A DNA stretch of 64,000 bases from Hyalangium minutum (GTDB lineage: Bacteria; Myxococcota; Myxococcia; Myxococcales; Myxococcaceae), in NCBI RefSeq assembly GCF_000737315.1, contig NZ_JMCB01000003.1, positions 558,001 to 622,000 of the forward strand, read 5' to 3'. Made by a program: the position numbers and the translations under genes. The notes beneath the pieces are model-generated. The model was not told the origin of the DNA. It made no database searches and saw only the letters and a program-made list of their open reading frames with translations. Within the stretch, counting starts at the first letter, position 1. Each line of letters starts with the position of its first letter. Below, piece after piece: positions 41,549 through 64,000 of the stretch.

Positions 41549-41791
41549 GGGGATTTCAACATCGCACCTCCGCTGTCCTTCTTCATCGCCTGTCTGCTCT
41601 CCTGCCCCCATACAGAGCGTGTAGGCGCCCCTTCACCCGCCATCAGGAGCACCGAGTGCGGTATGGTGCCCGGAGTTCCGGTGTTACGAAGGACTGCGGC
41701 GCCGAGCGGCGGACGGCTGTGAGGGAATCCTCCCTCGCGGATCCCCGGCTCTAGTGGTGGCGGCGTGGGTTGGCGTGAGAGCGGGTGAGCG

Positions 41792-45144: not shown

Positions 45145-45232
45145 CCCGGGACCGATGTTCGCAACTTCCATGCGAGCAGTATTCGGCGCCCCAGGGCTCT
45201 CCACAATACGTAACTGTGTAATATACCAGTGC

Positions 45233-46128: not shown

Positions 46129-47124
46129 TTACGGGGAGAAGCTTCGCCGGAGGATCTCCGTGAGGGGCACGCGGCAGGCGCGCAGCAGGGCCAGGAGCGT
46201 CGTCGCAGCCCACGGCGAGGGCGTCACGAAGTACCGCTGCGGCGTCAGCCCCGGGAAGGCCTCCTTCAGCTCGCGGAGCCGGGTGAGGTAGCCGATACCC
46301 GCCAGCCGGCGCTCCATCCACTTCACCTGGCGCGCCAGCACGGGCGAGCAGCCCTCGGTCTCCACCCCTACCAGCGGGCAGAACCCGAGCGAGAGCTGGC
46401 GCACCCCCTCCCCTCGCAGGCGCTCGGCCAACCTCGCGACGGCCGAGTAGTACACGCCCCACAGCCGGGTCCGCTCGAAGCGGATGAGGTTCAGGAGGTA
46501 GCCCTGGACGCGACCTCCGTCGAAGTACGGATCGAGCACCGCGTAGCCGAACACCTCAGCGTCCGCGCCCTGCCGCAGCACGAACATCCGCGCCAGCCCG
46601 TCGTCCTCGAACCCGAGCGGGCGGTTGAGGAAGTGCATCTCCACGGGGACCGCGCTCCGGCCCAGGTAGCTCCGGGTGATGGCGTCGAGGCGGGCCCGCT
46701 CCTCCTGCCCCAGCGCAGAGGGACGGACCTCGGCCACCTCGAAGCTGCCGCGCGTGGCCTTCTTGAGCGCTCCCCGCACCCGGGGGTGAACCTCAGCCGC
46801 GGGCGCATCGAGCTCCAGGATCTTGTCCATGCCCATGCCGCTGGTGCGGAAGCGGGGGCCGCCGAGCTCGGAGACGAGCGCCGCGACCTCCCTCGGCACG
46901 TAGAAGAAGAGCGGGTTCTTGCTGCTGCGGAGGAACCGCTGGATCAGCTCCACCCGATCGGCGCGGGCACAGACGGGAGGCCCCAGCGTGAGCTCGAAGC
47001 CGAAGGCGCGCTGGAAGGCGACATAGCCGAACGAGGTCTCGAAATAGGAGAGCCCCGGCTGCAGCGTCGAATAGGAGATCGGATCCGAGCCATGGGCTCG
47101 TACCAGCTCGTGCCTCACGCGCAC
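46129..47124 (-). CDS. Stand-alone DUF2156 / aaPGS-synthase-domain (aminoacyl-tRNA-dependent transferase-like) protein
   Basis: HGSDPISYSTLQPGLSYFE...GYVAF...LGPPVC, MHFLNRP, YLLNLIRF, QLSLGFCPL resemble the MprF C-terminal GNAT-like domain; no TM flippase domain. Confidence 0.65.
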   Translation of the reverse strand: MRVRHELVRAHGSDPISYSTLQPGLSYFETSFGYVAFQRAFGFELTLGPPVCARADRVELIQRFLRSSKNPLFFYVPREVAALVSELGGPRFRTSGMGMDKILELDAPAAEVHPRVRGALKKATRGSFEVAEVRPSALGQEERARLDAITRSYLGRSAVPVEMHFLNRPLGFEDDGLARMFVLRQGADAEVFGYAVLDPYFDGGRVQGYLLNLIRFERTRLWGVYYSAVARLAERLRGEGVRQLSLGFCPLVGVETEGCSPVLARQVKWMERRLAGIGYLTRLRELKEAFPGLTPQRYFVTPSPWAATTLLALLRACRVPLTEILRRSFSP

Positions 47125-47185
47125 AGGTTACGGTATTTTGAGGGTTCGCCGCCCGCGACTCCGCCGGGCGTCTCGGGGAGGGCCG

Positions 47186-48778: not shown

Positions 48779-49063
48779 ACGCCATGTCGCGCTGCGCGAT
48801 GTTTGGGGAGCAACCGGGCGTGCTTGGCACGACGTCCTGGGCAGGCTCGTTCCAGCGATATTTGCTGATGCCAGGGCGCCCCAGCGTCAGAGCAGGGTTA
48901 CCCCTTGAACCAATACAGCAGGTAGGCGCGGCCTCGCGTGGGGCTGCCGTGACCTCGGGCCGGCGGGGTGCAACCCCAGGCGCGGCTCGCTAGGCTTCGG
49001 TGTCGGACAACCAACAGAACATGCGTTGTGCCGCAGCATCGATTCCCCCTTCTTGAGGCCTGG

Positions 49064-52000
49064 ATGTCATCTCGTCCCCTGTTGTCCGGAGTGTATGTCG
49101 CGCTGACCGCGCTGCTGGTCTTTGCAGCCGGCTGTCATGAAGATCCGCCGCCGCCGCCCAGCGAGCAGCCGGATGCGACGCGCTCGCAGGTGCAGGTGAG
49201 CCGCAGCTCCAACGTGCTGGCCAACGGACGGGACGTCGTCACCCTCACCGTGAAGGTGGTGAAGGCGGATGGTGCGGCGCTGGCGGGCCGCACGGTGAAG
49301 CTGGAGATCAGCGGGGACGGCGCGATCGTCGCGCCGGCCTCGGGCCAGACCAACCCGGAAGGGGTGATGACGGCGACCCTGGTCTCCACCCAGGCCGGGC
49401 TCAAGAAGGTGAAGGCCTCGGTGGAAACGGACGGTGGACCGGTGGTGCTGACCTCCCAGCCCACCGTCGAGTTCATCGAGGTCCCAGCGGCGAAGCTGGC
49501 CTTCCTCAACACGAGCATTCAGGGCACGGCGGGCGCCCCGTTGAGCCCGGCCGTAGAGGTGGAGCTCCAGGATGCCGAGGGCCGTCGCGTCCCAGGCAGC
49601 ACGGCCTCGGTGACCGTGGCCCTGGCGACAGGGCCTTCGGACACGCTGGAAGGCACGCTCACGGTGGCGGCCGTGGATGGGGTCGCGCGCTTCAGCGATC
49701 TCGTCATCCAACAGGTGGGGACGGGCTACTCGCTGCGAGCCACCTCGGGAACGCTGACGGAGGCCACCAGTCCTTCCTTCGCGGTGACTGCCGCGCAAGC
49801 GGCGGTGCTGGAGCTGACAGGGCTTCCGAACAGCCTCGTCGCAGGGAGTTCGGCGGAGGTCCAGGTGACGCTGAAGGATGCCTTGGGCAACGTGGCCACC
49901 GGCTACACGGGCACGGTGCGCTTCACCTCCACGGATGGGGCGGCGGTGCTCCCGAGCGACTACACCTTCACGGCGGCCGACGCGGGGCAGAAGACGTTCA
50001 GCGCGGTGGAGCTGCGCACGGCGGGGTCCCAGTCCCTCACGGCCACGGATACGGTGACTGCCTCGCTGACGGGCACTCAGAGCACCACGGTCTCCCCTGC
50101 TGCGGCCACCAGCCTGAGCCTCTCGGCCCCGGCCTCCGCCACCGCGGGCAGTGCCTTCAGCGTCACGGTCACGGCGCGCGACGCGTTCAGCAACGCGGCC
50201 ACCGGCTACACGGGCACCGTGTCCTTCAGTTCGGATGACACGCGTGCGGCGCTGCCGGGCAGCTACACCTTCACGGCCGCCGATACGGGGGCGCACACCT
50301 TCAGCGTCACTTTGGGCACGACGGGCTCTCAGCCGGTGCGCGTCACCGACGGCACGCGCAACGCCAACGCCACCGTCACCGTCACTCCGGGCGCCGCCAC
50401 CAGCCTGAGCCTCGCTGCGCCCCTCACCGTCATGGCGGACGGCCCCTTCAACGTCACCGTCACGCTGCGGGACGCCTCCGGCAACGTGGCCACCGGCTAC
50501 ACCGGCACGGTCTCCTTCAGCTCGGACGATACGCGCGCAACGCTGCCGGGCAGCTACACCTTCACGGCCGCCGATGCGGGGGCGCACACCTTCAGCGTCA
50601 TCCTGGGCACGGCGGGCTCCCAGCCGCTCCGTGTGACCGACGGCACGCGCAACGCCAACGCCACTGTCACCGTCACACCGGCTACCGCTGCCACCCTGAG
50701 CCTCTCGGCTCCGGCCTCCGCTACGGCGGGCTCGCCCTTCTCCGTAACGGTCACGATGCGGGATACCTCCGGCAACGTGGCCACCGGCTACACCGGCACG
50801 GTGCACTTCACCTCCACGGACGGGGCGGCGGTGCTTCCGGCGGACTACACGTTCACGGCGGCCGACTCGGGGCAGAAGACATTCAGCACGGTGGAGTTGC
50901 GCACGGCGGGGGCTCAGTCCCTCACGGCCGCCGATCGGGTGACCACGACGCTGACGGATACCCGCAGCACCACGGTCTCCGCGGCCGCGGCCTCCAGCTT
51001 GAGCCTCTCCGCCCCGGCCTCTGCCCCCTCGGGCAGTGCCTTCGATGTCACGGTCACGGCCCGTGACGCGTTCAGCAACGTGGCCGCCGGCTACACGGGC
51101 ACTGTCTCCTTCAGCTCCGATGACACACGCGCCGGGCTGCCCACCAGCTACACCTTCACGGCCGCCGACGCAGGCAGCCATACCTTCAGTGTCACCCTGG
51201 GCACGGCAGGCGACCAACCGGTGCGCGTCACCGATGGCACGCGCAACGCCAGCGCCACTGTGAACGTCACCTCGGGGGCCGCCGCCACCCTGAGCCTCTC
51301 GGTCCCCTCCACCGCCACGGCAGGCAGTGCCTTCTCCGTGATGGTGACGCTGCGGGATGGCGCGGGCAACGTGGCCACCGGCTACACGGGCACGGTGCGC
51401 TTCACCTCCACAGACGCGGCGGCAGTGCTTCCAGGCGATTACACCTTCACCGCCGGCGACGCGGGGCAGAAGACGTTCAGCACGGTGGAGTTGCGCACGG
51501 CGGGGTCCCAGTCCCTCACGGCCACGGACACAGTGACCGCGACGATGACGGACACCCGCAGCACCACGGTCTCCCCTGGCGCGGCCGCCAGCCTGAGCCT
51601 CTCGGCCCCGGCCTCCGCCACCGCGGGCAGCGCCTTCAACGTCACCGTGCTGGCGCGCGACGCGTTCAACAACGTGGCCACCGGCTACACGGGTGCCGTG
51701 TCCTTCAGCTCGGATGACACGCGCGCGGCGCTGCCGAGCAGCTACACCTTCACGGCCGCCGACGCGGGCAGCCACACCTTCAGCGTCACCCTGGGCACGG
51801 TGGGCTCCCAGCCGGTGCGCGTCACCGACGGCACGCGCAACGCCAGTGCCACCGTCACCGTCAACCCGGGCGTCGCCGCCAGCCTGAGCCTCTCCGCCCC
51901 AGCCTCCGCCACCGCGGGCAGCGCCTTCAACGTCACGGTCACGGTCCGTGATGCCTCCGGCAACGTGGCCACCGGCTACACGGGCGCCGTGTCCTTCAGC

Positions 52001-55000
52001 TCGGATGACACGCGCGCGACGCTGCCGGGCAGCTACACCTTCACGGCAGCCGACGCAGGCAGCCACGCCTTCAGCGTCACCTTGGGTACGACGGGCAGCC
52101 AGCCCGTCCGGGTGACGGATGGCACACTCAACGCCAGCACCACCGTGAGTGTCACCCCAGCCGCCGCCGCGACCTTAAGCCTTTCGGTCCCGGCCTCTGC
52201 CACTGCGGGCAGCCCCTTCAACGTCACTGTCACGCTGCGAGACAGCTTCGGCAACGTGGCCACCGGCTACACGGGCACGGTGCACTTCACCTCGACGGAT
52301 GGAGCGTCGGTGCTCCCGGCGGACTCCACCTTCACGGCCGCGGACGCGGGGCAGAAGACGTTCAGCACGGTGGAACTGCGCACGGCGGGGTCTCAGTCCC
52401 TCACGGCCACGGACACAGTGACCGCGACGATGACGGACACCCGCAGCACCACGGTCTCCCCTGGCGCGGCCGCCAGCCTGAGCCTCTCGGCCCCGGCCTC
52501 CACCACCGCGGGCAGTCCCTTCGCGGTCACAGTGACAGCGCGCGACGCGTTCAACAACGTGGCCACCGGCTACACGGGCACCGTGTCCTTCAGCTCGGAT
52601 GACACGCGCGCGACGCTGCCGGGCAGCTACACCTTCACGGCCGCCAACGCGGGCAGCCGCGCCTTCAGCGTCACCTTGGGCACGGTGGGCTCCCAGCCGG
52701 TGCGCGTCACCGACGGCACGCGCAACGCCAGCGCCACCGTCACCGTCACTCCGGGCGCCGCCTCGAACCTGACCCTCTCGGCCCCAGCCTCTGCCACCGC
52801 GGGCAGCGCCTTCAACGTCACGGTCACGGCCCGCGATGCCTCCGGCAACATCGCCACCGGCTACAACGGCATGGTGTCCTTCACCTCGACCGATCCGGCC
52901 GCGGTGCTGCCGGGCATCTACCTCTTCACGCCGGGAGACGCGGGCGTGGCCTCCGTGTCCGTGGAGCTGCGCACTGCGGGGAACCGCACCATCACCGCGA
53001 CGGACACCCTCGATGCGGGGCTCACGCACACCGTGGCGGTGGCGGTCTCGGCCGGTGCTCCGGCGCAGCTCGCGTTCACCACGCAGCCACAGAGCGGCAC
53101 CGTGCGCGCGACCCTGGCCACGGTGCGTGTGGAGATCAGGGATGCCTACGGCAACACCTCCACTGCCTCGAGCCCCTCCGTGACGGTGAGCCTCACGGGC
53201 GGCAACCCTGCCTCTACGCTGAGTGGGACACGGACCGTCTCACCGGCCAGTGGCGTGGCCACGTTCTCGTCTCTCTCCATCGACCAGGAGGGCACGGGCT
53301 TCCAGCTCGTGGCCGCCGCCACGGGCCTGACGGGGGCCACGAGCACGGCTTTCCAGATCGTGGACAACCTGGCTCCGGCCGCGGCGGTCCTCACCGCCAC
53401 ACAGGCCTCGTCCTCCAGCATCCAGGTGTCGTGGACGGCGGTGGGCGATGACGGCACCCTGGGCACCGCCGCGAGCCACGATCTGCGCTACGCCACCGCT
53501 CCCATCACCAACGATGCGCAGTTCACCGCGGCCACGCCCGTTTCCCTGGCCGCGCCTCAGCCCCCGGGGAGCGCCGAGTCGGCCACCGTCACGGGACTGA
53601 ACCTCACGTCCACGTACTACTTCGCGCTCAAGGTCTTCGACGGGGCGGGCAACTCCAGCCTCTCGAACAGCCCCGGCGCGGGCGGCTCGGATCCCTGCGC
53701 GTCCGTCACGTGCACGCCGCCGGCCACAACGTGCTCGGCCAATGGCCGGAGCGTCGTCACCTACACCTCGGCGTGCGTGGACTCCGGAGGCGTGGGCGTC
53801 TGCCAAAACACCCCGACAAGCACGCTGTGCGCTTCGAACCAGACCTGCAACGCCGGCGCGTGCGTGCCAGTTACCGCGGCCAGCCAGCAGGGCCAGATCA
53901 TCATCAGTGAGTTCAGCGCCCTCGGCGCGGAGTTCATCGAGTTGCGCAACACCACGGCCACGGCCATCGACGTGCGGGGCTACACGCTGCGCAACATCGC
54001 AGGCCAGGAGGTGGATATCCGCGCTCCGAACGACCCGAACGGCACGGGCTCCACCCCGGTGCAGGTGCCCGCCAACGGCGTGCTCTACGGCATCCCCAAC
54101 CCGTCCAGCTCTGTCCCGGGAGGCGTGGGCTTCATCTACGGCGCGCCGGGCACCTCCTTCGCGCTGGCGGACACAGGGGACGCGCTCGCGCTCTACGCGG
54201 CGCCTCCGGCGGGCAACCTGCAGGACCTGGTGGACTTCCGCACCTTCGTCACCAACCCGAACACGCCACTGACGGCGAGCGCCTTCGTGGGCTTCTCCGG
54301 CAGCTCCACCCAGCTGGAACCCACCACATCCACGGCGGCTGGCAACGACACGGCCACCAACTGGTGCGTGAGCTTCTACCCGAACGGGGCTCGCGGCTCG
54401 CGCGTCACGAACACGGCGGGCGCTCTCAACGGCAGCTGCAAGGTGGCCGTCATCAACGAAGTCATCATCGATCCGCCGGGCACGGACGATCAGAAGTCCT
54501 TCGTGGAGCTGGCCGGCCCGGGTGGAGCCGTCATCGGCGGAGCAAAGATCACGGACGTGGAAGGTCTCGGGGGCACGGCGGGCGCACTGAATGCGGATGG
54601 AGATCTCAGCACGGGCGAGACGGACGGCGAGTTCACCCTCCCCGCCGGCACACGCTTCCCTGCGGATGGCATCCTGCTGGTGGCGGACGCGAACTCGTCG
54701 GTGACCTCGACTCAGGTGGTGGGCTTCACGCCGGGAGTGGACGTCCTGGCCCGGGACATGGACGTGGAGAACTCCGGAGGAGACTCCATCCAACTGGTCT
54801 CCGCCACGGGCACCCTGCTCGATGCGGTGGGCCATGACGCCAACGGCGCCACCCTGGCCACCAACGTGGCCTACAACGGCCTGGCCCTGTACGAGACGGC
54901 CACCGCGCTGACACCCACGACGCCAGCCGGCACTGCGGCCCCCTCGCTCGCTCGCAATACGCTGAGCACGGACACCGACAACAACCGCAACGACTTCCGG

Positions 55001-55756
55001 GCGGATCCCACGCCCACGCCTGGCTCGCCCAATGACGCCCTCAACCTCACCGTCTCCACGTTGTTCCCGGACGACGGACCGGCCACCGCGGGAGCCTCCA
55101 GCGTCCTGGTGACCGGAACGGATATCTCTCCGGGGTTCCGGGCGGCGTTCGGAGCCAACCCTTCGCAGCCCTGCACGGTGGCCAGCCCCACCTCCGCCAC
55201 CTGTAGCGTGGTGAGCAACACTGGCAACGCCGTGGCGAGGGTGAACGTGACGTTCTCCAACCCGGCGAGCGTGGGGACTCCCAACTTCGTCCTCCCCAGC
55301 GGATTCACCTACACGGGCAACGAGAACGAGACGAACAGCATGCTGGAGGCGGACTACTGCAACCTCCAGTTCCCCGCGAGCTTCTCGGTGCCGTCCAACA
55401 CGGCGACACCGCTGCTCTACGGCCGCATCTTCGAGACGAGCATCACCGAGTCCATGGGAGCGCCCTCGGGCATCCTGGCCGAGGTGGGCTATGGCAACAA
55501 CGGCACGGACCCGCGAAGCACCAACTCGTGGAAGTTCTTCTCCGCGAACTACAACGTGCAGGTCGGCAACGATGATGAGTTCTCAGGCTCGTTCACGGCG
55601 CCCACCGTGGCGTCGAACACGAACTTCTCGTACACATTCCGGTTCAGCCAGGACAACGGGCTGAAATGGACCTACTGCGACCTGAACGGAGCGGGCTCCA
55701 ACACGGGCATGAACTTCGAGACGACGCAGATGGGTGTGATGACGGTCACTCCCTAA
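49064..55756 (+). CDS. Giant surface lipoprotein/adhesin: Big_1 Ig domain, 11 Ig-like repeats, FN3, Cys-rich segment, 2 lamin-tail domains, IPT/TIG, myxobacterial C-terminal domain
   Basis: Lipobox FAAGC after start MSSRPLL (49064); ANGRDVVTLTV (invasin-like); repeated GNVATGYTGTV units; SWTAVGDDG (FN3); IISEF..EFIEL and INEV..SFVEL (LTD); EADYCNLQFP...WTYCD. Confidence 0.88.
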   Translation: MSSRPLLSGVYVALTALLVFAAGCHEDPPPPPSEQPDATRSQVQVSRSSNVLANGRDVVTLTVKVVKADGAALAGRTVKLEISGDGAIVAPASGQTNPEGVMTATLVSTQAGLKKVKASVETDGGPVVLTSQPTVEFIEVPAAKLAFLNTSIQGTAGAPLSPAVEVELQDAEGRRVPGSTASVTVALATGPSDTLEGTLTVAAVDGVARFSDLVIQQVGTGYSLRATSGTLTEATSPSFAVTAAQAAVLELTGLPNSLVAGSSAEVQVTLKDALGNVATGYTGTVRFTSTDGAAVLPSDYTFTAADAGQKTFSAVELRTAGSQSLTATDTVTASLTGTQSTTVSPAAATSLSLSAPASATAGSAFSVTVTARDAFSNAATGYTGTVSFSSDDTRAALPGSYTFTAADTGAHTFSVTLGTTGSQPVRVTDGTRNANATVTVTPGAATSLSLAAPLTVMADGPFNVTVTLRDASGNVATGYTGTVSFSSDDTRATLPGSYTFTAADAGAHTFSVILGTAGSQPLRVTDGTRNANATVTVTPATAATLSLSAPASATAGSPFSVTVTMRDTSGNVATGYTGTVHFTSTDGAAVLPADYTFTAADSGQKTFSTVELRTAGAQSLTAADRVTTTLTDTRSTTVSAAAASSLSLSAPASAPSGSAFDVTVTARDAFSNVAAGYTGTVSFSSDDTRAGLPTSYTFTAADAGSHTFSVTLGTAGDQPVRVTDGTRNASATVNVTSGAAATLSLSVPSTATAGSAFSVMVTLRDGAGNVATGYTGTVRFTSTDAAAVLPGDYTFTAGDAGQKTFSTVELRTAGSQSLTATDTVTATMTDTRSTTVSPGAAASLSLSAPASATAGSAFNVTVLARDAFNNVATGYTGAVSFSSDDTRAALPSSYTFTAADAGSHTFSVTLGTVGSQPVRVTDGTRNASATVTVNPGVAASLSLSAPASATAGSAFNVTVTVRDASGNVATGYTGAVSFSSDDTRATLPGSYTFTAADAGSHAFSVTLGTTGSQPVRVTDGTLNASTTVSVTPAAAATLSLSVPASATAGSPFNVTVTLRDSFGNVATGYTGTVHFTSTDGASVLPADSTFTAADAGQKTFSTVELRTAGSQSLTATDTVTATMTDTRSTTVSPGAAASLSLSAPASTTAGSPFAVTVTARDAFNNVATGYTGTVSFSSDDTRATLPGSYTFTAANAGSRAFSVTLGTVGSQPVRVTDGTRNASATVTVTPGAASNLTLSAPASATAGSAFNVTVTARDASGNIATGYNGMVSFTSTDPAAVLPGIYLFTPGDAGVASVSVELRTAGNRTITATDTLDAGLTHTVAVAVSAGAPAQLAFTTQPQSGTVRATLATVRVEIRDAYGNTSTASSPSVTVSLTGGNPASTLSGTRTVSPASGVATFSSLSIDQEGTGFQLVAAATGLTGATSTAFQIVDNLAPAAAVLTATQASSSSIQVSWTAVGDDGTLGTAASHDLRYATAPITNDAQFTAATPVSLAAPQPPGSAESATVTGLNLTSTYYFALKVFDGAGNSSLSNSPGAGGSDPCASVTCTPPATTCSANGRSVVTYTSACVDSGGVGVCQNTPTSTLCASNQTCNAGACVPVTAASQQGQIIISEFSALGAEFIELRNTTATAIDVRGYTLRNIAGQEVDIRAPNDPNGTGSTPVQVPANGVLYGIPNPSSSVPGGVGFIYGAPGTSFALADTGDALALYAAPPAGNLQDLVDFRTFVTNPNTPLTASAFVGFSGSSTQLEPTTSTAAGNDTATNWCVSFYPNGARGSRVTNTAGALNGSCKVAVINEVIIDPPGTDDQKSFVELAGPGGAVIGGAKITDVEGLGGTAGALNADGDLSTGETDGEFTLPAGTRFPADGILLVADANSSVTSTQVVGFTPGVDVLARDMDVENSGGDSIQLVSATGTLLDAVGHDANGATLATNVAYNGLALYETATALTPTTPAGTAAPSLARNTLSTDTDNNRNDFRADPTPTPGSPNDALNLTVSTLFPDDGPATAGASSVLVTGTDISPGFRAAFGANPSQPCTVASPTSATCSVVSNTGNAVARVNVTFSNPASVGTPNFVLPSGFTYTGNENETNSMLEADYCNLQFPASFSVPSNTATPLLYGRIFETSITESMGAPSGILAEVGYGNNGTDPRSTNSWKFFSANYNVQVGNDDEFSGSFTAPTVASNTNFSYTFRFSQDNGLKWTYCDLNGAGSNTGMNFETTQMGVMTVTP
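49800..53060 (+). repeat. Intragenic tandem Ig-like repeats with a higher-order (ABBAB)x2+A' structure
   Basis: The conserved caacg(t/c)ggcc-type anchor occurs at 49888, 50191, 50482, 50773, 51076, 51367, 51670, 51961, 52252, 52555 and 52846. Spacings are 303, 291, 291, 303, 291, repeated twice (1479-bp period). Confidence 0.92.
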
Positions 55757-56355
55757 GCCGGCACGGGGATCTGCAGGCAGTACCTCCCGAACCCCACCAG
55801 CGAGCTGAAGCGCGGGTGGAGGTCCGGGGGGTACTCGAACCGGCGGGCAGCCCGGGCCAGCTCGGCGAGGTGAGCGTGGTAGCCGCCCGCGATCGCCGAG
55901 AGCATGGGCGCGAGCGGATCCTCTCCCGAAGCCACCTCCCCCGCGGCGCGCTCCAGCGCTTCGAGCCCGCCTGGGTATGACTGGAGCAACTGCAGGTCGT
56001 AGGCGATCACGCCGTCCTCATGGAACGAGGACAGCAGGTGCTTGATCAGGACGTGCGGCGTGGCGAGCAGCCCATTCCAGACGATCACCTGCTGGGGGCA
56101 GTAGAGGAGCTGGAGCGGAACCCGGAGCAGAATGTGGCCCCAGAGACTCCGGCGGTTGGCGGCGTGCTCGATGGGCGTCTCATTGAACGCGAAGGGCAGC
56201 ATCTCGAGCGTCGCGGCCTTCACCTGTGCCGGATGAGGAACCGCCTCCAGGAGGCCCTGCGCGACGAAGAACTCGAACCGAGGCTCCCAGCCGCTGTCCC
56301 GGCAGAGCCCCACCTTCAGCCCCAGCTCGAACACCCGCTCTATCGTCAATGACAT
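55753..56355 (-). CDS. Hypothetical protein, HED-YDLQLL family paralogue 1
   Basis: 200-aa ORF, clearly collinear with 58027-58644 (RVPLQ, KHLLS..HED...YDLQLLQS, RFEYP, PRF..LVGF..C). Confidence 0.82.
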   Translation of the reverse strand: MSLTIERVFELGLKVGLCRDSGWEPRFEFFVAQGLLEAVPHPAQVKAATLEMLPFAFNETPIEHAANRRSLWGHILLRVPLQLLYCPQQVIVWNGLLATPHVLIKHLLSSFHEDGVIAYDLQLLQSYPGGLEALERAAGEVASGEDPLAPMLSAIAGGYHAHLAELARAARRFEYPPDLHPRFSSLVGFGRYCLQIPVPA

Positions 56356-56399
56356 GGGAAGCCTGTCCTGTCGGCGGCCGCTACTCTAGAACAAGGGCC

Positions 56400-57182
56400 A
56401 TGGACCCAAAACCCGGAGGGCTCAAGTACAGGACGGCGCTCATCACCGGAGCCTCAGGAGGAATCGGGCGCGGGCTGGCCGCGTGGTTTGCTCGGCGCGA
56501 AGTGAAGGTCTTCGGTGCCGCTCGCCGCTTGGAGGAACTCGAAGCGCTCGCGCGAGAGCTCCAGGGACAGGGAGAGCTCATCCCGGTAAGGCTGGATGTG
56601 GCCGACGCCCGGGCGACCCTGGAGACCCTGCGATCGATCGACGATGCGTGTGGAGGGCTCGACCTCGTCGTGGCGAACGCGGCCGTGGCACTGGAGACTC
56701 CGGGAGACGCGCCCTCATGGGATGCGGTGGAGCGGATCCTCGACGTGAACGTCCGAGGGGCCGCCGCCACGCTCACCGCAGTGGCAGACCGGATGGCCTC
56801 ACGCGGCCGTGGCCACCTGGTGGGCATGTCCTCCCTGGGTGGAGGACGCGGTGTCCCCCGGCACAACACCTACAGCGCGTCCAAGGCCTTCCTCACCAAC
56901 TTCCTCGAAGGGCTGCGGATCGAGCTCGCGCCCCGAGGGGTTCAGGTGACCACCATCCATCCTGGCTTCGTGAAGACCCCCGGCACGGCGGGCAACACGT
57001 TCAAGATGCCGTTCCTGCTCGAGCTCGACGATGCGGCCGAGCGCATCGGCCGCGCCATCGTGCGAGGCTCGGCTGAGTTCTCGTTCCCCTGGCAGACGGC
57101 GCTGATGGCGAAGCTGGTGCGGATGCTCCCGAATGCGCTCTGGGATCGCGCCGCGAGGAGCCTGGGGCCTGGACGCGAGTAA
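56400..57182 (+). CDS. Short-chain dehydrogenase/reductase (SDR)
   Basis: TGASGGIG, VANAA, YSASK, HPGFVKTP; start MDPKPGG at 56400. Confidence 0.92.
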   Translation: MDPKPGGLKYRTALITGASGGIGRGLAAWFARREVKVFGAARRLEELEALARELQGQGELIPVRLDVADARATLETLRSIDDACGGLDLVVANAAVALETPGDAPSWDAVERILDVNVRGAAATLTAVADRMASRGRGHLVGMSSLGGGRGVPRHNTYSASKAFLTNFLEGLRIELAPRGVQVTTIHPGFVKTPGTAGNTFKMPFLLELDDAAERIGRAIVRGSAEFSFPWQTALMAKLVRMLPNALWDRAARSLGPGRE

Positions 57183-57211
57183 GCAACGGATCCGTGGCAT
57201 AGTGCGGCGCG

Positions 57212-58027
57212 ATGAAGGGTGCCGAATCCCCCGTGGATACCGTCTCCGAGCCCTACTTCGAGCGCCTGTGCGAGCTGGCGGCGCGCGACCAGTGGCGGCT
57301 CGAGGATCTCGACTGGCACACGCTCGATGTGGCGGCACTCCCGGAGGAGTTCCGGCAGACCGCGGCCGATGGCTTCGCGCAGCTCCAGTGGGGAGAGCGG
57401 ACCGCGCAGCACGCGGCGGCGAGGCTCGTGGAGCTCCTGCCCGAGGGCTCCGCGCGAGCGTTCCTCGTGACGCAGCGCACGGACGAGGCCCGGCACGTGG
57501 CCTTCTTCGAGCGAGTCATGCAGGTGCTCGGCTGTGAGGGGCGCGTGAGGCCCTCGGTGCAGCGGCTGATGCGCGAGGTCCAGGAGGCCGACACGCCCGA
57601 GGCGCTGGTGCTCGGCATGCAGATCCTCATCGAGGGCGTGGCCCACTCGCTCTTCCAGGAGGCGGCCAAGGTGGTCAACGGCTTCGAGGCGGACGAGAGC
57701 CTCGCGGGCCCGCTCCAGGCGCTGAAGAAGGTCATGGGCGAGTGGATGCCTCGGCTGCTCGCGAGAGACGAGAGCCGGCACATCGCCTTTGGGATCCACT
57801 ACCTGCGCCAGCGCCTGCCCCGGCTCGACGGCGCGTCCCGGCGCCAGTTGGAAGAGAAGGTCTCGCTGTGGGGCGAGTGGGTGCTGGAGCAGGCCCGGGA
57901 TCCGGATCTCGTGTACGGGATTGGCATCGACGGCGAGGCGGTGTGCGGGCAGCTGCTCGAGGATCTGAACCTCCGCCTCGGGCAGGTGGGGCTCGAGACG
58001 CGGATCGCACCCTTGAAGGCGGCGTGA
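57212..58027 (+). CDS. Ferritin-like di-iron carboxylate enzyme (R2lox/desaturase/ADO-like fold)
   Basis: Four-helix ligand pattern WGE...DEARH...IEG...DESRH. Confidence 0.85.
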   Translation: MKGAESPVDTVSEPYFERLCELAARDQWRLEDLDWHTLDVAALPEEFRQTAADGFAQLQWGERTAQHAAARLVELLPEGSARAFLVTQRTDEARHVAFFERVMQVLGCEGRVRPSVQRLMREVQEADTPEALVLGMQILIEGVAHSLFQEAAKVVNGFEADESLAGPLQALKKVMGEWMPRLLARDESRHIAFGIHYLRQRLPRLDGASRRQLEEKVSLWGEWVLEQARDPDLVYGIGIDGEAVCGQLLEDLNLRLGQVGLETRIAPLKAA

Positions 58028-58644
58028 TGGGCACCGAGCAATCCATCCAGGAGCGGATCGGCTTCTTCGTGAAGCACGGGTACCTCGATCGGCTGCCGAC
58101 GCCCTGGCAATTGAAGGTGGGCTGGCTGGCGATGCTGCCCATCACCCTGAGCGAGAGCGAGCGGGAGCGAGAGCGCAGCCGGAACACACTGATGGGGCAG
58201 ATCCCCATCCGGGTGCCGCTTCAGGTCCTCTACAGCCCGAGACAGTTCGTCACGGACACGGGGATCACCCAGGGCTCGGAGGCCCTCGTGAAGCACGTGC
58301 TCAGCGTGTACCACGAGGATGCGTTCCTCGGTTACGACCTGCAGTTGTTGCAGTCGCATCCCAACGGCCTGGCGCTGCTGCGCGAAGAGGCGGCGAAGGT
58401 TGTCGAGGGCAAGACGCTCTGGGCGCCTTACCTGCGCAAGCTGGTGGGCTGGCCGGGCTACCACGAGGGGCTCATCCGGCTGGCAGAGGCGGCCGAGCGC
58501 TTCGAGTACCCGGATCCGCTGGATCTCGATCCGCGCTTCGCGACGCTGGTGGGCTTCTCGGAGTTCTGCTGCTCGATGCCGGACTGGCCTCCGAGCGGGT
58601 TCTACGGCTTCGAGTTCGAGAAGGTCTTCTCGCGGTGGAAGTGA
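58027..58644 (+). CDS. Hypothetical protein, HED-YDLQLL family paralogue 2
   Basis: ATG overlaps the TGA of the di-iron gene (58025-58029); 205 aa; collinear with 55753-56355. Confidence 0.85.
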   Translation: MGTEQSIQERIGFFVKHGYLDRLPTPWQLKVGWLAMLPITLSESERERERSRNTLMGQIPIRVPLQVLYSPRQFVTDTGITQGSEALVKHVLSVYHEDAFLGYDLQLLQSHPNGLALLREEAAKVVEGKTLWAPYLRKLVGWPGYHEGLIRLAEAAERFEYPDPLDLDPRFATLVGFSEFCCSMPDWPPSGFYGFEFEKVFSRWK

Positions 58645-59426
58645 GGCCCGGCGATCTGGAGGCGTGTGATCCGGAGTTCCAGCGGCGCCATGCCGGCTGG
58701 ATCACGAAGGCCGTGCGCACGTGGTTCCGAGCGGACATCCAGGGAATGGAGCACCTGCCGGACGGTCCATTCGTGGGCGTCGGGAACCACAGCGGAGGGG
58801 TGCTGATTCCGGACACCCTGCTGTGGGTCGGCACGTACCACACGTCGGGGCGCAAGCCGCCGATGGTGACGCTGGCCCACGATGGGATGTTCGACGCGTA
58901 CCCGAAGCGGCTCGCGAGCGCCCTGGCGAAGCTGGGGGCGGTACGGGCGCGCAAAGAGATCGCGGCCGAGGCGCTTCGGAGAGGCTTCGCCGTGCAGGTG
59001 TACCCGGGAGGCGACCACGACGCGTGCCGGCCTTTCTCGCGGAGGAACGAGATCGTCTTCGCGGGCCGCAAGGGCTACGTGGAACTGGCACGGGAGGCAG
59101 GAGTGCCGATCGTGCCCGTGGTGTCGGTGGGAGCGCACGAAGCCTTGGTGGTGCTCTCGGACGGGGCGTCGCTGGCGAAGCGGCTGGGCCTTGACCGCCG
59201 CTTCCGCCTGAAGGCGTTTCCGATCACGTTGTGCCTGCCGTGGGGAATCTGGCTGGGTCCCCTGCCCGGCTATCTGCCGCTGCCCGCGAAGATGAGCCTT
59301 CGGGTGTTGCCGCCAATCTCCGCCGAGGGTGGGGACATCGACGCGATTGACGCGCGTGTGCGAGCATCCATGCAACGCGCGGCTGACGAGCTGGCACGAA
59401 GGAGACGCTTCCCATGGATCGGATGA
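58641..59426 (+). CDS. Lysophospholipid/MGAT-DGAT2-like acyltransferase
   Basis: NHSGG (HxxxxD: HSGGVLIPD), YPGGD, RKGYVELAREAGVPIVPV; GTGA overlap with the upstream gene. Confidence 0.88.
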   Translation: MRPGDLEACDPEFQRRHAGWITKAVRTWFRADIQGMEHLPDGPFVGVGNHSGGVLIPDTLLWVGTYHTSGRKPPMVTLAHDGMFDAYPKRLASALAKLGAVRARKEIAAEALRRGFAVQVYPGGDHDACRPFSRRNEIVFAGRKGYVELAREAGVPIVPVVSVGAHEALVVLSDGASLAKRLGLDRRFRLKAFPITLCLPWGIWLGPLPGYLPLPAKMSLRVLPPISAEGGDIDAIDARVRASMQRAADELARRRRFPWIG

Positions 59427-60892
59427 AGGTCTTCAGGTTCGACGAGTCCCTGGACGTGAACACCGCGACAGAGAGCGAGCTCGGGGCGAGGCTGGAGCGG
59501 CTCTGGGACAAAGCGCCGGAGCTGCGGCCTCGGCCGGAGATGCACGACTACCAGCTCACCTACCCGCCCGCGGTGCAGATGGAGAAGCGGGACGGCTACC
59601 GGCGCACACCCACGGACGAGGAATACCTGCGCGACGCGGTGGGAGCGTTCAACGCGGCCGGGTATTACTTCCATTTTGGCTTCTGCAAGTACCGTTGCCG
59701 CTACTGCTTCCACTACGAGCTGCTGACGCGGCACAACGATGAGCTGATGTCGCGGTACGTGGATGCGCTCTCGCTGGAAATGCGGCACGTCCGGGAGCTG
59801 ACGCCGAAGCTGAAGCCCGCGCTGTACTTCCTGGGAGGCGGCACCCCGACGGCCCTGCCAGTGCACCTGCTGGAGCGGTTCCTGAAGAACCTGGTGACGC
59901 ACTTCGGCCCGCCGCGCACGTCGATGAGCACGGTGGAGGCCAAGCCGGTGACGGCGTCGGATGACAAGCTCCGGGCTCTGGTCCAGGCGGGCTTCCGGCG
60001 CATCAACTTCGGGGTGCAGACGCTGGATCCGGAGCTCTACGCTTTCCACCACCAGAAGGAGGACATGCGGGTCGCCCTGGATGCGATCGAGCGGGCCCGG
60101 AAGCTCGGTTTCGAGTACATCAACATCGACATCATGACGGGGCTGGAGCGGCAAACGCCCGAGTCCTGGCAGAAGACGCTCACGGAGATCGAGCGGCTGG
60201 CGACGAGCGGCGCAGTGGACAGCGTCTTCATCTACCCGTACCACGACGATCCGCGCAGCGGCACGTACGGGAAGCCCGGGGCAGTCCCCTCCATCGTGCA
60301 GACAGCGCACAGCGACGCGCAGGCGCGGGCGCTGTTCACGCGGCTGGGCTGGAAGGAGCTGGGCGCGAGGTTCTACAGGGCGCCTCGGCACGTGCGGCGC
60401 GAGATCCTGGAGCTGGCGAAGCTGCGAGTGAACCCGGCCTACGGCGAGGTGCTGTACCACGGGCTGGGCAACTCCAGCTTCTCGATCGGGGATCGGGCGA
60501 CGTTCCTGAACCACCGGGACGTGCAGGACTACTGCGCGGCGGTGGAGAAAGGCGGCCTGGGCATCGCGTACTGGCGGACGCTGGATAACGCCCAACGGGC
60601 AACGCGGGACGTGACGTTCGACCTGCTCTACAGCCCGTTCACGCGGGTACGCTCACGGGCGAGGAAGTACGGGGCGGAGACGATGGCGCACCACCGCAAG
60701 CAGCTGGAGCGGTGGGCCGAGCTGGGCCTGGGCGAAGAGAACTGGCTGCTGGGCACGTTCTCGCTGTCACCGCTCGGCAAGCTGGTGCACCAGCAGCTCA
60801 TCCCCCAGCACTACCTGGCCGAGGATCGCCGCGAGCTGGAAGAGACGATGCAGCGGCGCCAGCAAGAAGGCCGCCGCTACCGAGGCTACTGA
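59423..60892 (+). CDS. HemN-like (class C-type) radical SAM protein
   Basis: FCKYRCRYCFHY (CxxxCxxC), LGGGTPT, INFGVQT, NIDIMTGL..QT; ATGA overlap with the acyltransferase stop. Confidence 0.86.
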   Translation: MKVFRFDESLDVNTATESELGARLERLWDKAPELRPRPEMHDYQLTYPPAVQMEKRDGYRRTPTDEEYLRDAVGAFNAAGYYFHFGFCKYRCRYCFHYELLTRHNDELMSRYVDALSLEMRHVRELTPKLKPALYFLGGGTPTALPVHLLERFLKNLVTHFGPPRTSMSTVEAKPVTASDDKLRALVQAGFRRINFGVQTLDPELYAFHHQKEDMRVALDAIERARKLGFEYINIDIMTGLERQTPESWQKTLTEIERLATSGAVDSVFIYPYHDDPRSGTYGKPGAVPSIVQTAHSDAQARALFTRLGWKELGARFYRAPRHVRREILELAKLRVNPAYGEVLYHGLGNSSFSIGDRATFLNHRDVQDYCAAVEKGGLGIAYWRTLDNAQRATRDVTFDLLYSPFTRVRSRARKYGAETMAHHRKQLERWAELGLGEENWLLGTFSLSPLGKLVHQQLIPQHYLAEDRRELEETMQRRQQEGRRYRGY

Positions 60893-60909
60893 CCCCGCTC
60901 CGCCCCGGC

Positions 60910-62892
60910 TCAGAGGTTGACGGAGCCGTCAGCCATTTGCGCCAGGCCCGGATGCGTCGTCACGAGCAGCACCTGCGTCAGCGTGCCCAGGTGCTTCAGC
61001 ATGCGCCCAATCAGCGGCAGCTTCACCTCGTCCATGCCGACGAACGGGTGCTCCATGATGAACGGGTACTTCACCCGGGTGCTCACCTTCTCCACGACCA
61101 CCATGCGCAACGCCAGGTAGTACATGTCCAGGTCGCGCGGGGGGATGTCGCCCACGAGCAGCTGTTGGCCCGGCACGAACACCGAAGCCCTACCGTCCTT
61201 GTCCCACTCGACGCCCAGATAGCGGCGATCCGTGAGCGCGCTCAGGTACTGGGTGCAGCGATCCCGCAGCATCCCGCCCAGCGTGGTGATGTCCGTGGAC
61301 AGCAGATCCGCCGCCAGCATCATCACCACCGGAGACGGATCCTCCATCGGCCCCGAGCCCATCCCCGCCGGCTCCGCACCCGCCGGCCCCGCCCCAGCGG
61401 GAGTCGGAGGCGGCGCTCCCGCCTTGGCCAGAACGATGGACTCCTTGGTCCGGGAGAGCTCGCGCTCCACCTCGCGCAGATCGCGCACGAAGGAGCCCTT
61501 CCGGGAGACTTCGACGCTGAGCTCGTCGATCTGCTGCTTGATCTCGTCGCGCTGCTGCCCGGCGGCGACGAAGTCCGGATCGGCCTCCATGGCCGCGAGC
61601 TGATCCCTCAGCTCGTTGAAGCGCTGCTCCAACAGGCCCTTGCGCTCGAAGACGCCTGGAATGTCCTCGTGGTTCTCCAGCTCGAGGATCTTCATCGCCT
61701 TGCGCACCGGCGAGACCTCAGCCTCGAACTCCTCGAGGATCTTCTTCTCGCGGGCGGAGAACATGCCCTCCTTGTTGCGCACGGTGGACGTCTTCGACAG
61801 GTCGTCCACGTACCGCAGCGCCAGCATCGCCGCGAAGCCGAACGCCGGGATGTCCAGCAGCGTCAGGTACCGCCAGCCGCTGTCCACCGCGAAGCCCAGG
61901 ATGATGCCGCCCAGCAGGAACAGGGCGCCGACCCCGAGCCCCGCCCAGAACAGCCGGTTCTGCTTCAGGGGCTCCACCGCGACCGGAGCCGCCGCCGCGT
62001 CCTGCTCGCGCTCCACGGCCAGCCGGTTCAGCGCGTCGTCCTTCTTGGCCACCACCTTGGAATAGCGCTCCACGCGCGTCAGGATGTCCGCGGGCAGCCC
62101 CAGCGACTCGGGGGTGGGCGCGGCGTTCCACGCGTTCTCCGCGTCCCGCACGGCCGCCTTCACGCCCTCGGTGCTCTTCAGCTTCCGCTCGGTCTCGAAG
62201 AGCTGCGAGTTCAACCCGTCCAGCTTGAACTGCACCTCCTCCATCTCGCGAGACTTCACCAGTTCCTGCTCCAGCTCCTTCACCTTGGCCTCAGCCGCGG
62301 GGATGTTCTCCGCGGGGGCCACCGCCTGGGTGCTGGCCAGGGCCGGCATGTTCGGGTTGCTCGCGAGCCCTCCGTGCCCGTGCCCGCTGTGCAGGCCCGG
62401 GTTGCTCGCCGCGCCGGGCATCGACGGCCGCTTGAGATCCGGCTTCGAGGTGCGCACCCGCGGGCGGCGCGACGGGAGCTGGCTCGGCATCAGGCAGCAC
62501 ACCTGCTCCCAGACGTTGCGCGACGGCAGGCCCACCTGCACGCGCAGGAACTGGCCGATCTCCGCCGTGTCCCCGGACACCAGCTCCGGAGGCTGCCCCG
62601 GCACCGTCTGCTTGTGCAGCGTCCCCGAGCCGCCCAGCTCCCGTAGCAGCCGGTACGTGAGGTTGTCCTGGCCCAGCATGGTGAAGGCGGACTTGCCACG
62701 CTTATCGGCCTGCGCCGAGAAGCTGGCATCGTCGCCACGCCCATCGGCGTACAGGAGCGCCAGGGACAGCGCCGCCAGAGGCGTCATCTCGGCGGCTGGG
62801 GGCTTGAGGACGAGGTAGCCCGGCTTGAGCTGGAAGCGGCCTTGTGCCGAGAAACCCCGGACGTTTTGGACAGCAACCTCGAGGAAGTGCAT
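60910..62892 (-). CDS. SMC/Rad50/YhaN-like coiled-coil membrane protein with degenerate ATPase motifs
   Basis: N-terminal FLEVAVQNVRGF strand; coiled coils; two TM helices (LFWAGLGVGALFLLGGIILG..., IPAFGFAAMLAL); C-terminal ..YLALRM...PFIMEHPFVGMD resembles the Walker B/D-loop region. Confidence 0.65.
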   Translation of the reverse strand: MHFLEVAVQNVRGFSAQGRFQLKPGYLVLKPPAAEMTPLAALSLALLYADGRGDDASFSAQADKRGKSAFTMLGQDNLTYRLLRELGGSGTLHKQTVPGQPPELVSGDTAEIGQFLRVQVGLPSRNVWEQVCCLMPSQLPSRRPRVRTSKPDLKRPSMPGAASNPGLHSGHGHGGLASNPNMPALASTQAVAPAENIPAAEAKVKELEQELVKSREMEEVQFKLDGLNSQLFETERKLKSTEGVKAAVRDAENAWNAAPTPESLGLPADILTRVERYSKVVAKKDDALNRLAVEREQDAAAAPVAVEPLKQNRLFWAGLGVGALFLLGGIILGFAVDSGWRYLTLLDIPAFGFAAMLALRYVDDLSKTSTVRNKEGMFSAREKKILEEFEAEVSPVRKAMKILELENHEDIPGVFERKGLLEQRFNELRDQLAAMEADPDFVAAGQQRDEIKQQIDELSVEVSRKGSFVRDLREVERELSRTKESIVLAKAGAPPPTPAGAGPAGAEPAGMGSGPMEDPSPVVMMLAADLLSTDITTLGGMLRDRCTQYLSALTDRRYLGVEWDKDGRASVFVPGQQLLVGDIPPRDLDMYYLALRMVVVEKVSTRVKYPFIMEHPFVGMDEVKLPLIGRMLKHLGTLTQVLLVTTHPGLAQMADGSVNL

Positions 62893-62919
62893 GCGCGGCC
62901 CCATCCTAGCGCACCAACG

Positions 62920-62954
62920 AAAAAAGGAGCGTCCGCGAACGGACACTCCTTTTT
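62920..62954 (-). terminator. Rho-independent terminator after rplS
   Basis: Minus strand aaaaaggagtgtccg-ttcg-cggacgctcctttttt: GC stem, UUCG loop, U6 tail. Confidence 0.85.
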
Positions 62955-63000: not shown

Positions 63001-63375
63001 CTAGGACTTCTTGGCGGCCGGGGTGTTCTCTTCCTGCACGTCCACGCGGGAAGCCTTGCCCTTGAGGTTGCGGAGGTAGAAGAGGCGGTTGCGGTTCACG
63101 CTGCCGCGGGAGAGGATCTCGATCTTCTCGTAGCGGGGGCTGTGCAGCGGGAAGATGCGCTCCACGCCGACGCCGAAGGACACCTTGCGCACGGTGAAGC
63201 TGGCGCGGTTGCTGCCCTTCTTCTTGCGGATGACGACACCCTCGAACGCCTGGACGCGCTCCTTCTCGCCCTCCTTCACCTTCCAGTGGACCCGGACGGA
63301 GTCCCCGGTCCGGAAATCGACCAGCTCCTTGCGGAGGTGCTTGGACTCGACGTACTCGATGGCGCTTCGACGCAT
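63001..63375 (-). CDS. rplS: 50S ribosomal protein L19
   Basis: [26 protein letters not shown]...[21 protein letters not shown]. Confidence 0.98.
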
Positions 63376-63506: not shown

Positions 63507-64000
63507 CTACAGGTCTTCCTCCCGGAGGGCGAGCAGTTTCTGATCCGCCTTCCCGAGCTCCAGGCGGCCAAAGAGGTCCGGCCGGCGCTCCCGGGTGAGC
63601 ATCAGGGCCTTCCAGCGGCGCCAGCGGGCGATCCGGGCGTGATCGCCGCTCTGGAGCACGGCGGGTACCTCGGCGCCCCGGAAGACAGGAGGCCGCGTGT
63701 ACTGGGGGTGCTCCAGCAGTCCCTCCTCGAAGCTCTCGCTGACGTGGGACGCCTGGTTGCCCAGCACCCCGGGGAGCAACCGGGCCACCGCATCCACCAC
63801 CGCCAGGGCTGCGATTTCCCCGCCCGTGAGGATGAAGTCCCCCAGGGACAGCTCCTCGTCCAGGAACGGCATGACGCGCTCGTCGACGCCCTCGTAGCGG
63901 CCACAGACGAGGATCAGGCCCGCGGAGTGGCTCACCAGCTCACGCGCCCGCGCCTGGGTGAACGCGGGCCCCCGAGGGCTCATCAGCAGCACCTTGGCGC
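63507..64000 (-). CDS. trmD: tRNA (guanine37-N1)-methyltransferase, 5' end outside the window
   Basis: [46 protein letters not shown]. Confidence 0.97.

Follow-up and report, generated by a model that had tools for sequence, protein, structure and literature searches.

An apparently new protein family in a conserved operon of the Myxococcota, with a possible role in lipid assembly

The locus in Hyalangium minutum

The 64,000-nucleotide stretch of Hyalangium minutum DNA analyzed here (contig NZ_JMCB01000003.1, positions 558,001 to 622,000; hereafter called the window, with positions counted from its first letter) contains two related genes, here named A and B, that flank a short-chain dehydrogenase/reductase (SDR) gene and a gene for a ferritin-like di-iron protein. 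B is followed by genes for an acyltransferase and a radical S-adenosylmethionine (SAM) enzyme, and two further genes of the same locus lie beyond A. The genes are listed below with their lengths in amino acids (aa) where these matter, and with the family match and expect value (E) on which each assignment rests.

46129-47124, minus strand: stand-alone PF09924 (DUF2156, MprF C-terminal-like) protein, a tandem Gcn5-related N-acetyltransferase (GNAT) (PF09924, E 3.5e-23)
47138-48778 (putative start), plus strand: B12-binding-domain radical SAM-like protein (weak PF02310 and PF04055 matches)
55753-56355, minus strand: paralog A, 200 aa, from the list of open reading frames (ORFs)
56400-57182, plus strand: SDR (PF00106, E 1e-41)
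57212-58027, plus strand: ferritin-like di-iron (or Mn/Fe) carboxylate protein, AurF/R2lox-like (PF11583 AurF, E 9e-9)
58027-58644, plus strand: paralog B, 205 aa, beginning MGTEQS, inside the mechanically called ORF 57742-58644
58635-59426, plus strand: PlsC/DGAT2-like acyltransferase of the lysophospholipid acyltransferase (LPLAT) type (PF01553, E 1e-9; PF03982, E 3e-6)
59414-60892, plus strand: HemN-like (class C type) radical SAM enzyme (PF04055, E 1e-20)

The start of B was assigned to the ATG at 58027 because its orthologs are likewise 205 aa long. With this start, a single base is common to the TGA of the di-iron gene and the ATG of B (GCGTGATGGGC). The stop of B (58644) and the GTG start of the acyltransferase gene (58635) overlap by 10 nt, the acyltransferase and radical SAM genes overlap by 13 nt, and a gap of 44 bp separates A from the divergent SDR gene. 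The original prediction for this DNA, made from the letters without database searches, had described A as divergent from the operon and B as translationally coupled inside it, and the 44-bp divergent gap and the base shared with the di-iron stop codon agree with that description. A scan of positions 55500-61200 for sigma-70 promoters and terminators found nothing exceeding the shuffled expectation.

The enzymes encoded around A and B resemble known classes to differing degrees. The di-iron protein matches the NCBIfam R2-like ligand-binding oxidase model below its cutoff (E 7.5e-9) and gives weak R2lox matches in the PDB, such as 4HR0 (E 0.002-0.006). The HemN-like radical SAM enzyme carries CX3CX2C and GGGTP motifs; its matches to NCBIfam STM4012, HemN, and ChuW all lie far below cutoff, and its best PDB matches are HemN (1OLT, E 5e-23) and the class C methyltransferase NocN (E 1e-11). 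The PF09924 protein (331 aa) consists of the PF09924 domain alone, and its match to NCBIfam MprF (E 6e-6, with a cutoff of 600 bits) is confined to model positions 561-834. Its gene has as divergent partner the B12-domain radical SAM-like gene, whose translation reads CPYTCSFC.

A and B are paralogs of a family with no described relative

A and B are 46% identical over 178 residues (BLASTP, E 1e-48), a similarity far beyond chance. All of the motifs that the original prediction had aligned by eye, including KH-x-LS-x2-HED-x4-YDLQLLQS, are present in the BLASTP alignment, and the ORF positions and the 46% identity agree with its description of A and B as paralogs flanking the SDR and di-iron genes. 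The two proteins differ at their ends: A has a conserved N-terminal extension of about 23 residues and lacks the C-terminal PDWP..FYGF tail found in B. In comparison with Hyalangium rubrum, A has a ratio of nonsynonymous to synonymous substitution rates (dN/dS) of 0.23 and B one of 0.33, which indicates purifying selection and argues that both are functional genes. That A might be a pseudogene or a decaying duplicate is ruled out by its dN/dS of 0.23, its presence in six or seven genomes, and the retention of all the site residues described below.

Database entries name these proteins "hypothetical protein." Searches of Pfam-A 2025 and NCBIfam 20.0 with A and B gave nothing better than E 0.05, and the few matches of that order were chance-level short stretches; PADLOC and PHROGs gave no match. 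When 33 diverse members of the family were scanned singly against family profiles, the sole match was an SRPBCC domain fused to two members. Among PDB sequences, phmmer and a family profile found nothing credible, only a spurious 40-residue stretch of Rab33B. B was modeled with confidence by AlphaFold2 from an alignment of 34 sequences (mean predicted local distance difference test score [pLDDT], 88; predicted template modeling score [pTM], 0.84); the model is all alpha, with 15 helices and zero strands. Foldseek searches with this model returned noise from the PDB (best E 0.75, template modeling [TM] score 0.19, probability 0.08, for the TenA entry 3MVU) and no match from BFVD (best E 1.2, TM score about 0.2). 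An hhalign comparison of the N-terminal half of the fold with its C-terminal half, made in search of an internal repeat, gave nothing. The family, which the original prediction had likewise failed to recognize, thus appears new as judged by profile libraries, PDB sequences, and Foldseek searches with the predicted structure.

Both proteins look soluble, their sequences showing no sign of a signal peptide or a transmembrane segment; B has a grand average of hydropathy of -0.25 and no hydrophobic transmembrane helices. Isoelectric point and hydropathy, considered as hints of tRNA or membrane binding, showed no consistent trend.

Several helical families were considered as possible homes for A and B, and most of them were rejected. 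An HD-domain metal-dependent phosphohydrolase would show PF01966 or a Foldseek HD match, neither of which was obtained, and the H...HD...D ligand pattern is not present, the E and D of the HED motif being replaced in distant relatives (HHG, HLG, HNG, HQV, and others). The seven-helix heme-oxygenase (HO)-like/TenA fold, including that of the HO-like di-iron oxidases, has no Pfam support, and the 3MVU match is at noise level; an HO-like di-iron oxidase needs six carboxylate or His ligands on four helices, whereas the family as a whole offers just three potential ligands, H90, H96, and D104. COQ4-like and phospholipase A2 (PLA2)-like assignments had support from neither Pfam nor Foldseek. The Lipocone superfamily (Wnt, SAA, PTDSS, TelC, VanZ, and others) was considered after a literature match and gained no support; its members have a four-helix conical core, mostly membrane embedded, with conserved polar residues that act on lipid head groups (PMC12419801). 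The B model had no Foldseek match to the Wnt, SAA, or TelC structures of that superfamily, and the text of the Lipocone paper mentions no linkage to radical SAM, PlsC, or DUF2156 genes (PMC12419801).

Phyletic range and conserved residues

An exhaustive hidden Markov model search of 1.84 billion cluster representatives recovered 175 clusters at E < 1e-3, ten of which make up the close family; the rest are distant relatives of 220-435 aa. When a single genome was scanned for each of 185,579 species, 27 loci were found, and all 27 belong to Myxococcota, from the Myxococcaceae, Hyalangium, the Polyangiaceae, the Sandaracinaceae, and the Nannocystaceae/Enhygromyxa. The named distant relative P0199 comes from the Kofleriaceae, also Myxococcota. 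The family is centered on the Myxococcota.

Conservation was counted over 127 relatives of at least 190 aa, which share about 25% overall identity, and is given in B numbering. Q28, R62, H90, H96, D104, and Y145 are almost invariant, each being kept in 116-127 of the 127 relatives (D104 in every one), and P24 and G79 are almost invariant as well. Six near-invariant polar residues at about 25% identity suggest an active or ligand site, and the pattern as a whole points to an enzyme or a ligand site. The E and D of the HED motif, H146, and C181 are conserved only within the close (core) family. A keeps the Q, the R, both H residues, the D, the YH pair, and the C. From conserved H, HED, D, and C residues the original prediction had suggested a metal- or cofactor-binding enzyme; the near-invariance of H90, H96, and D104 fits that suggestion, whereas the cysteine and the acidic pair of HED are confined to the core family.

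The gene neighborhood of B

Synteny was assessed by tblastn of the window proteins against all fetched loci (about 33), and the denominators that follow are the assessable loci. The ancestral order, found in Polyangia, Nannocystales, and Sandaracinaceae, is an optional di-iron gene, the PF09924 gene, B, the acyltransferase gene, and the HemN-like radical SAM gene, codirectional and with gaps of 0-40 bp or overlaps. Within the family, B represents the ancestral core, and it is syntenic at every locus from the Myxococcota. All 30 of 30 loci have a tandem-GNAT gene, and the PF09924 gene is adjacent to B in at least 20. At three loci (L028, L030, and L041) PF09924 is absent, and a gene for a 420- to 460-aa Fem-like GNAT (PF13480) lies between the acyltransferase and radical SAM genes instead. 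The acyltransferase gene directly follows B at 28 of 31 loci; the radical SAM gene is present at 28 of 29, its product being 45-93% identical across the phylum; and the di-iron gene is found at about 14 of 33, or approximately half. The linkage to di-iron, acyltransferase, and radical SAM genes that had been noticed in the window therefore recurs across the phylum. The Myxococcia differ in having the PF09924 gene inverted, with a B12-domain radical SAM gene acquired as its divergent partner; the two genes are adjacent in the window and in L001, L007, L008, L012, L013, L040, L046, and L047. Because the flanking genes vary between genomes, the module itself, of four to five genes, is the conserved unit.

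In the window, the conserved locus is split by a 6.8-kb gene (48968-55756, plus strand), which leaves the PF09924/B12 radical SAM pair 7 kb from A. Most of its 2262-aa product is a string of repeats, each about 95 residues long (...ATGYTGTV.F.S.D..A.LP..YTFTAAD.G..TFS...). All the genes of the set are contiguous in L046, the closest relative found (88-93% protein identity), where only about 55 bp lie between the B12 radical SAM gene and A, suggesting that the giant gene is an insertion specific to the lineage of the window.

Upstream of the PF09924 gene lie genes for a LysR regulator (45155-46117, plus strand) and a membrane fatty-acid desaturase (41792-42883, plus strand; PF00487, E 2e-37). 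The position of the desaturase gene is kept in the close relatives L007, L046, and L047, and it may be an outlying member of the locus. On the other side, the radical SAM gene is separated from rplS/trmD (63001-63375 and 63507-63992) by a gene for a 678-aa protein with no Pfam match (60910-62946, minus strand), whose conservation is limited to close relatives such as L007. The upstream flank (38779-41611) contains rsmI-, YraN-like, and L-serine dehydratase-looking genes, judged from sequence alone, and housekeeping genes border the locus on both flanks.

At one locus from the Sandaracinaceae (JACKEC010000022.1; L002, 1-10773), the PF09924, B, acyltransferase, and radical SAM genes are contiguous and codirectional with an aryl-polyene/xanthomonadin-like set. 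This set comprises a flavin adenine dinucleotide (FAD) halogenase, an acyl carrier protein, an AMP-ligase, an LpxL-like acyltransferase, a 4HBT thioesterase, and LolA-like, DHDPS-like, and DUF3261 proteins. In this lineage the module may attach or tailor a lipid anchor.

Fusions and distant relatives

In two 532-aa proteins, P0301 (L040, 4362-5960) and P0309, B is joined in frame to the acyltransferase by a (HDKPGELGA)x6 linker. The fusion is present on two independent metagenome contigs, and the locus is otherwise identical to that of the window. This arrangement argues strongly that B and the acyltransferase act together. An AlphaFold2 model of P0301, made on a four-row alignment to look at domain docking, was uninformative (pLDDT 35, pTM 0.29). 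In P0199, from the Kofleriaceae, an SRPBCC/START-like lipid-binding domain is fused to a B-like domain, and a 339-aa double-GNAT protein is encoded directly before it, repeating the GNAT-then-B order. A lipid-binding fusion partner suggests a different contribution from the B domain, namely, chemistry.

Other distant relatives are found in different surroundings. Relatives 23-24% identical to B are followed by a CTP_transf_3 cytidylyltransferase at L034 (7539-10797) and L042 (1092-2515), with NeuB also following in L034; contexts of this sugar-nucleotide type suggest that the superfamily is not confined to one pathway or to lipids. In L034-L036, an unannotated 150-aa protein precedes the distant relative of the family. 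Four members, P0163, P0169, P0186, and P0188, have in common a C-terminal extension of about 200 residues (alignment columns about 470-675) that has no Pfam match and carries the motif GVSLGLP...W..F.K.F...GW.N.RLEQ.GLD.P...FG.F...LIDYG...RL.DP.V...P.LLLG.S...TP..F.L. By its sequence, this extension is a candidate for another undescribed domain.

A belongs to a sister subfamily

Orthologs of A (62-97% identity, 30 clusters) are present at six or seven of about 33 loci (the window, L001, L012, L013, L040, L046, and the fragment L047) and were found only where B is also present; about 26 of the 33 loci have B only. The SDR gene co-occurs with A in the window, L001, L012, L040, and L046. In a neighbor-joining tree, A falls outside B and groups with a separate subfamily (P0146-P0150). 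As placed by this tree, A is a member of an older sister subfamily and not a recent local duplicate of B.

The sister subfamily has an operon of its own, without B, that encodes an SDR, a class I SAM methyltransferase (UbiE/MenG- and PmtA-like), the A-like protein, and an OlsE-like FA_hydroxylase, with 4-nt overlaps, on short contigs (L043, 83-2957; L044, 544-2697). The sole NCBIfam match of the hydroxylase is OlsE (E 4e-41; 141 bits, against a 475-bit cutoff), and the protein is cut short by the contig end. Two metagenome scans for longer contigs carrying this operon gave, first, nothing and, second, only the close relatives of the window L046 and L047. The SDR of the window is 44-45% identical to the SDR heading the sister operon, which suggests that the pairing of an A-type gene with an SDR gene is old, and A and the SDR gene in the window look like a module added on the 5' side of the B operon. 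The sister and B operons are functionally parallel, each having an SDR, a methylating enzyme, and an O2-dependent di-iron enzyme; the counterparts are radical SAM versus SAM-dependent methylation and a soluble versus a membrane-bound di-iron enzyme.

A proposed role in lipid assembly and its alternatives

Upon the observed paralogy, selection, lack of known relatives, predicted fold class, conservation, phyletic range, synteny, and fusions, we build a proposal in which the lipid substrate, the catalysis, and the order of the steps are what we infer. The LPLAT, the MprF/Fem-type transferase, the R2lox-like protein, the OlsE-like protein of the sister operon, and the nearby desaturase suggest an amino-acid-bearing or acylated lipid. 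We propose, with our confidence evenly balanced, that B is a new catalytic component of (amino)acyl-lipid assembly or tailoring and that A does an analogous step on an SDR-processed substrate. The module would assemble or tailor an amino-acid- or acyl-ester-bearing lipid (ester or amide linked). Within it, B would be a catalytic partner, not a passive scaffold, that works physically with the acyltransferase and the GNAT. It would use Q28, R62, H90, H96, D104, and Y145, through His/Asp acid-base chemistry or at a mononuclear metal site, to act on an ester-linked intermediate. B might, for example, create or shift a hydroxyl or lyso acceptor for the acyltransferase to acylate. In a single lineage of the Myxococcia, A and the SDR would have joined the operon on its 5' side, and A probably carries out the corresponding reaction on a form of the substrate that the SDR has processed.

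A more specific form of this proposal, conceivable but on balance unlikely, is that the Myxococcota have a route of their own to an amino-acid-containing lipid and that A and B, as a new enzyme fold, supply a step missing from it. The module might then be a fourth convergent aminolipid synthase system, representing the ornithine/aminolipid pathway of Sorangium-type myxobacteria, or it might make a tRNA-dependent aminoacyl-lipid with a radical-SAM-modified chain. Either variant would have B carry out His/Asp or metal chemistry of a kind not seen before on an ester-linked intermediate.

Several observations weigh against a catalytic role for B in making such lipids. PF09924 enzymes move aminoacyl groups from tRNA, and no dedicated aminoacyl-tRNA synthetase was found linked to the module. 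At L016-L018, B leads straight to the radical SAM gene and no acyltransferase gene stands beside it. The distant relatives P0195 and P0302 adjoin the CMP-sugar genes CTP_transf_3 and NeuB, and our literature search found no paper on the family or on the cluster in myxobacteria. The aminolipid-synthase variant faces a difficulty of its own, in that known aminolipid N-acyltransferases, the OlsF C terminus included, carry PF13444 (PMC11631085), whereas the GNAT partners found here are PF09924 or PF13480.

Among the alternatives, the one that survives best, although we consider it rather unlikely, is that A and B are noncatalytic helical scaffolds or substrate-presenting subunits. By analogy with the ERG28-type tether of the sterol C4-demethylation enzymes, they would tether the GNAT, acyltransferase, and radical SAM enzymes or hand over a hydrophobic substrate. 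Such a role would suit the tight translational coupling of B on both sides, the fusion to the acyltransferase via a flexible repeat linker, the lack of a recognizable catalytic fold, and partner enzymes that appear to have no membrane anchors even though the presumed substrate is a lipid. It fits poorly with six polar residues that stay almost invariant across the 127 relatives at about 25% identity, a pattern typical of active or ligand sites. In addition, the SRPBCC fusion would be redundant were the B domain itself the lipid carrier, and the family occurs in quite different gene contexts.

It is improbable, in our estimate, that the product is a diffusible secondary metabolite or a modified tetrapyrrole or quinone cofactor, with A and B as tailoring enzymes. 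The best-known roles of HemN-like radical SAM enzymes are in heme chemistry and in natural-product methylation or cyclopropanation, and AurF-type di-iron enzymes (AurF, CmlI, and VlmA) and relatives of PF09924 occur in natural-product pathways. The methyltransferase of the sister operon is UbiE/MenG-like, and the Sandaracinaceae module is contiguous with the aryl-polyene-like set. The conserved core, however, contains no polyketide synthase, nonribosomal peptide synthetase, transporter, or regulator genes. The same four genes are kept, at 45-93% identity, in three classes and in unrelated housekeeping surroundings, which is more typical of lipid or envelope physiology, and the LPLAT, R2lox-like, and OlsE-like neighbors point to lipids.

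We think it quite improbable that B is a dedicated turnover hydrolase for the product of the neighboring DUF2156-type transferase. The analogy is with the synthase-hydrolase pairs mprF/acvB(virJ), PA0920/PA0919, mprF2/ahyD, and the fungal erdS/erdH, DUF2156 synthase genes typically adjoining the gene for a hydrolase that removes the amino acid (PMC7334510). B does come directly after the PF09924 gene at most loci, a distant relative comes directly after a double-GNAT gene, and the His/Asp/Tyr/Arg set could serve ester hydrolysis. The known hydrolases, in contrast, are alpha/beta-hydrolases or VirJ-type serine esterases, whereas the B model is all alpha and the family has no invariant serine. 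Furthermore, B is coupled at least as tightly to the acyltransferase (by fusion) and to the radical SAM enzyme, which looks biosynthetic, and A-type members have no GNAT gene in view. Membership of A and B in the AcvB/VirJ, PA0919, AhyD, or ErdH families was rejected, there being no strands and no invariant serine for a Ser-Asp-His triad.

Finally, the heterodimer or pair of sequential steps that the original prediction had read into the two retained copies is very doubtful as an obligatory arrangement: both copies are intact, under purifying selection, with every site residue kept, and are held in one locus in at least six genomes, but most genomes have B only, which shows that the family works without A and makes an obligatory A-B heterodimer unlikely as a general property, and A groups with a subfamily whose own operon lacks B, follows the SDR gene rather than B, and has no PDWP..FYGF tail. 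A and B may still form a complex in H. minutum.

Comparison with known systems

If B has the catalytic role in lipid assembly that we favor, an undescribed family with an apparently new fold would be fixed in a phylum-wide operon. That operon would join a DUF2156/Fem transferase, an LPLAT, a HemN-like radical SAM enzyme, and an R2lox/AurF-like oxidase, four types never reported together. The module would offer a target of about 8 kb for a myxobacterial lipid and could represent the ornithine lipid or aminolipid pathway of the phylum. Its radical SAM enzyme would be the second of the HemN-like type to act on lipids, the only one in a 2026 review being Jaw5 (PMC13459092), and a possible cellular role would be suggested for the R2lox-like protein. 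The reach of the proposal is limited by the narrow phyletic range of the family, and the natural B-acyltransferase fusion and the six near-invariant residues make it directly testable.

The closest parallel to the upstream half of the module is provided by the aminoacyl-lipid systems based on DUF2156, namely, the MprF aminoacyl-phosphatidylglycerol synthases and the fungal ErdS/ErdH. In most loci a PF09924 tandem-GNAT gene lies directly upstream of B, and in the MprF and ErdS systems the synthase is typically paired with a second dedicated enzyme encoded next door (PMC7334510). Unlike those synthases, the PF09924 protein described here is a stand-alone protein that lacks any flippase, membrane, or fused tRNA synthetase domain; its likeness to MprF is weak, and a Fem-like PF13480 protein can take its place. 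B, all alpha in its model, differs from the alpha/beta and VirJ hydrolases, and LPLAT and radical SAM partners occur in no known MprF or ErdS system.

The ornithine-lipid systems (OlsB/OlsA, OlsF, and OlsH/OlsI, with the modifiers OlsE and OlsG) share with the module the logic of a GNAT-fold transferase combined with a PlsC-type O-acyltransferase. A PF01553/PF03982 LPLAT is encoded in the same operon as the GNAT at 28 of 31 loci, and the A-sister protein is encoded between a SAM methyltransferase and an OlsE-like hydroxylase. Ornithine lipids are made by Sorangium cellulosum, a member of the Myxococcota, even though it lacks OlsBA, and no order of the Myxococcota is named in a 2026 review among the holders of OlsB, OlsF, or OlsH (PMC12971839). 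The described Ols pathways, on the other hand, have no B-like protein, no HemN-like radical SAM enzyme, and no AurF-like protein. A split OlsF, with the PF09924 protein as its N-acyltransferase half, is ruled out, since that half carries PF13444 (PMC11631085).

Two-component HemN-like systems, such as the C10P/C10Q cyclopropanase, Jaw5, and NocN/NosN, resemble the downstream half of the module, the best PDB matches of its radical SAM enzyme being HemN and NocN. HemN-like radical SAM enzymes frequently depend on a small partner protein, and their targets are unsaturated acyl or aromatic carbons (PMC6050322, PMC13459092). B is not a methyltransferase-fold partner like C10Q, and its gene comes directly before the radical SAM gene at three loci, the acyltransferase gene usually lying between them.

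In overall build, A and B resemble the HD, HO-like/TenA, COQ4, secreted PLA2, and Lipocone proteins, with about 200 residues, an all-helical fold, and conserved His and Asp residues, and some of those proteins have lipids or prenyl-quinones as substrates. Most Lipocone members have transmembrane helices (PMC12419801), whereas B has none. Overall, the operon is a new combination of known enzyme classes.

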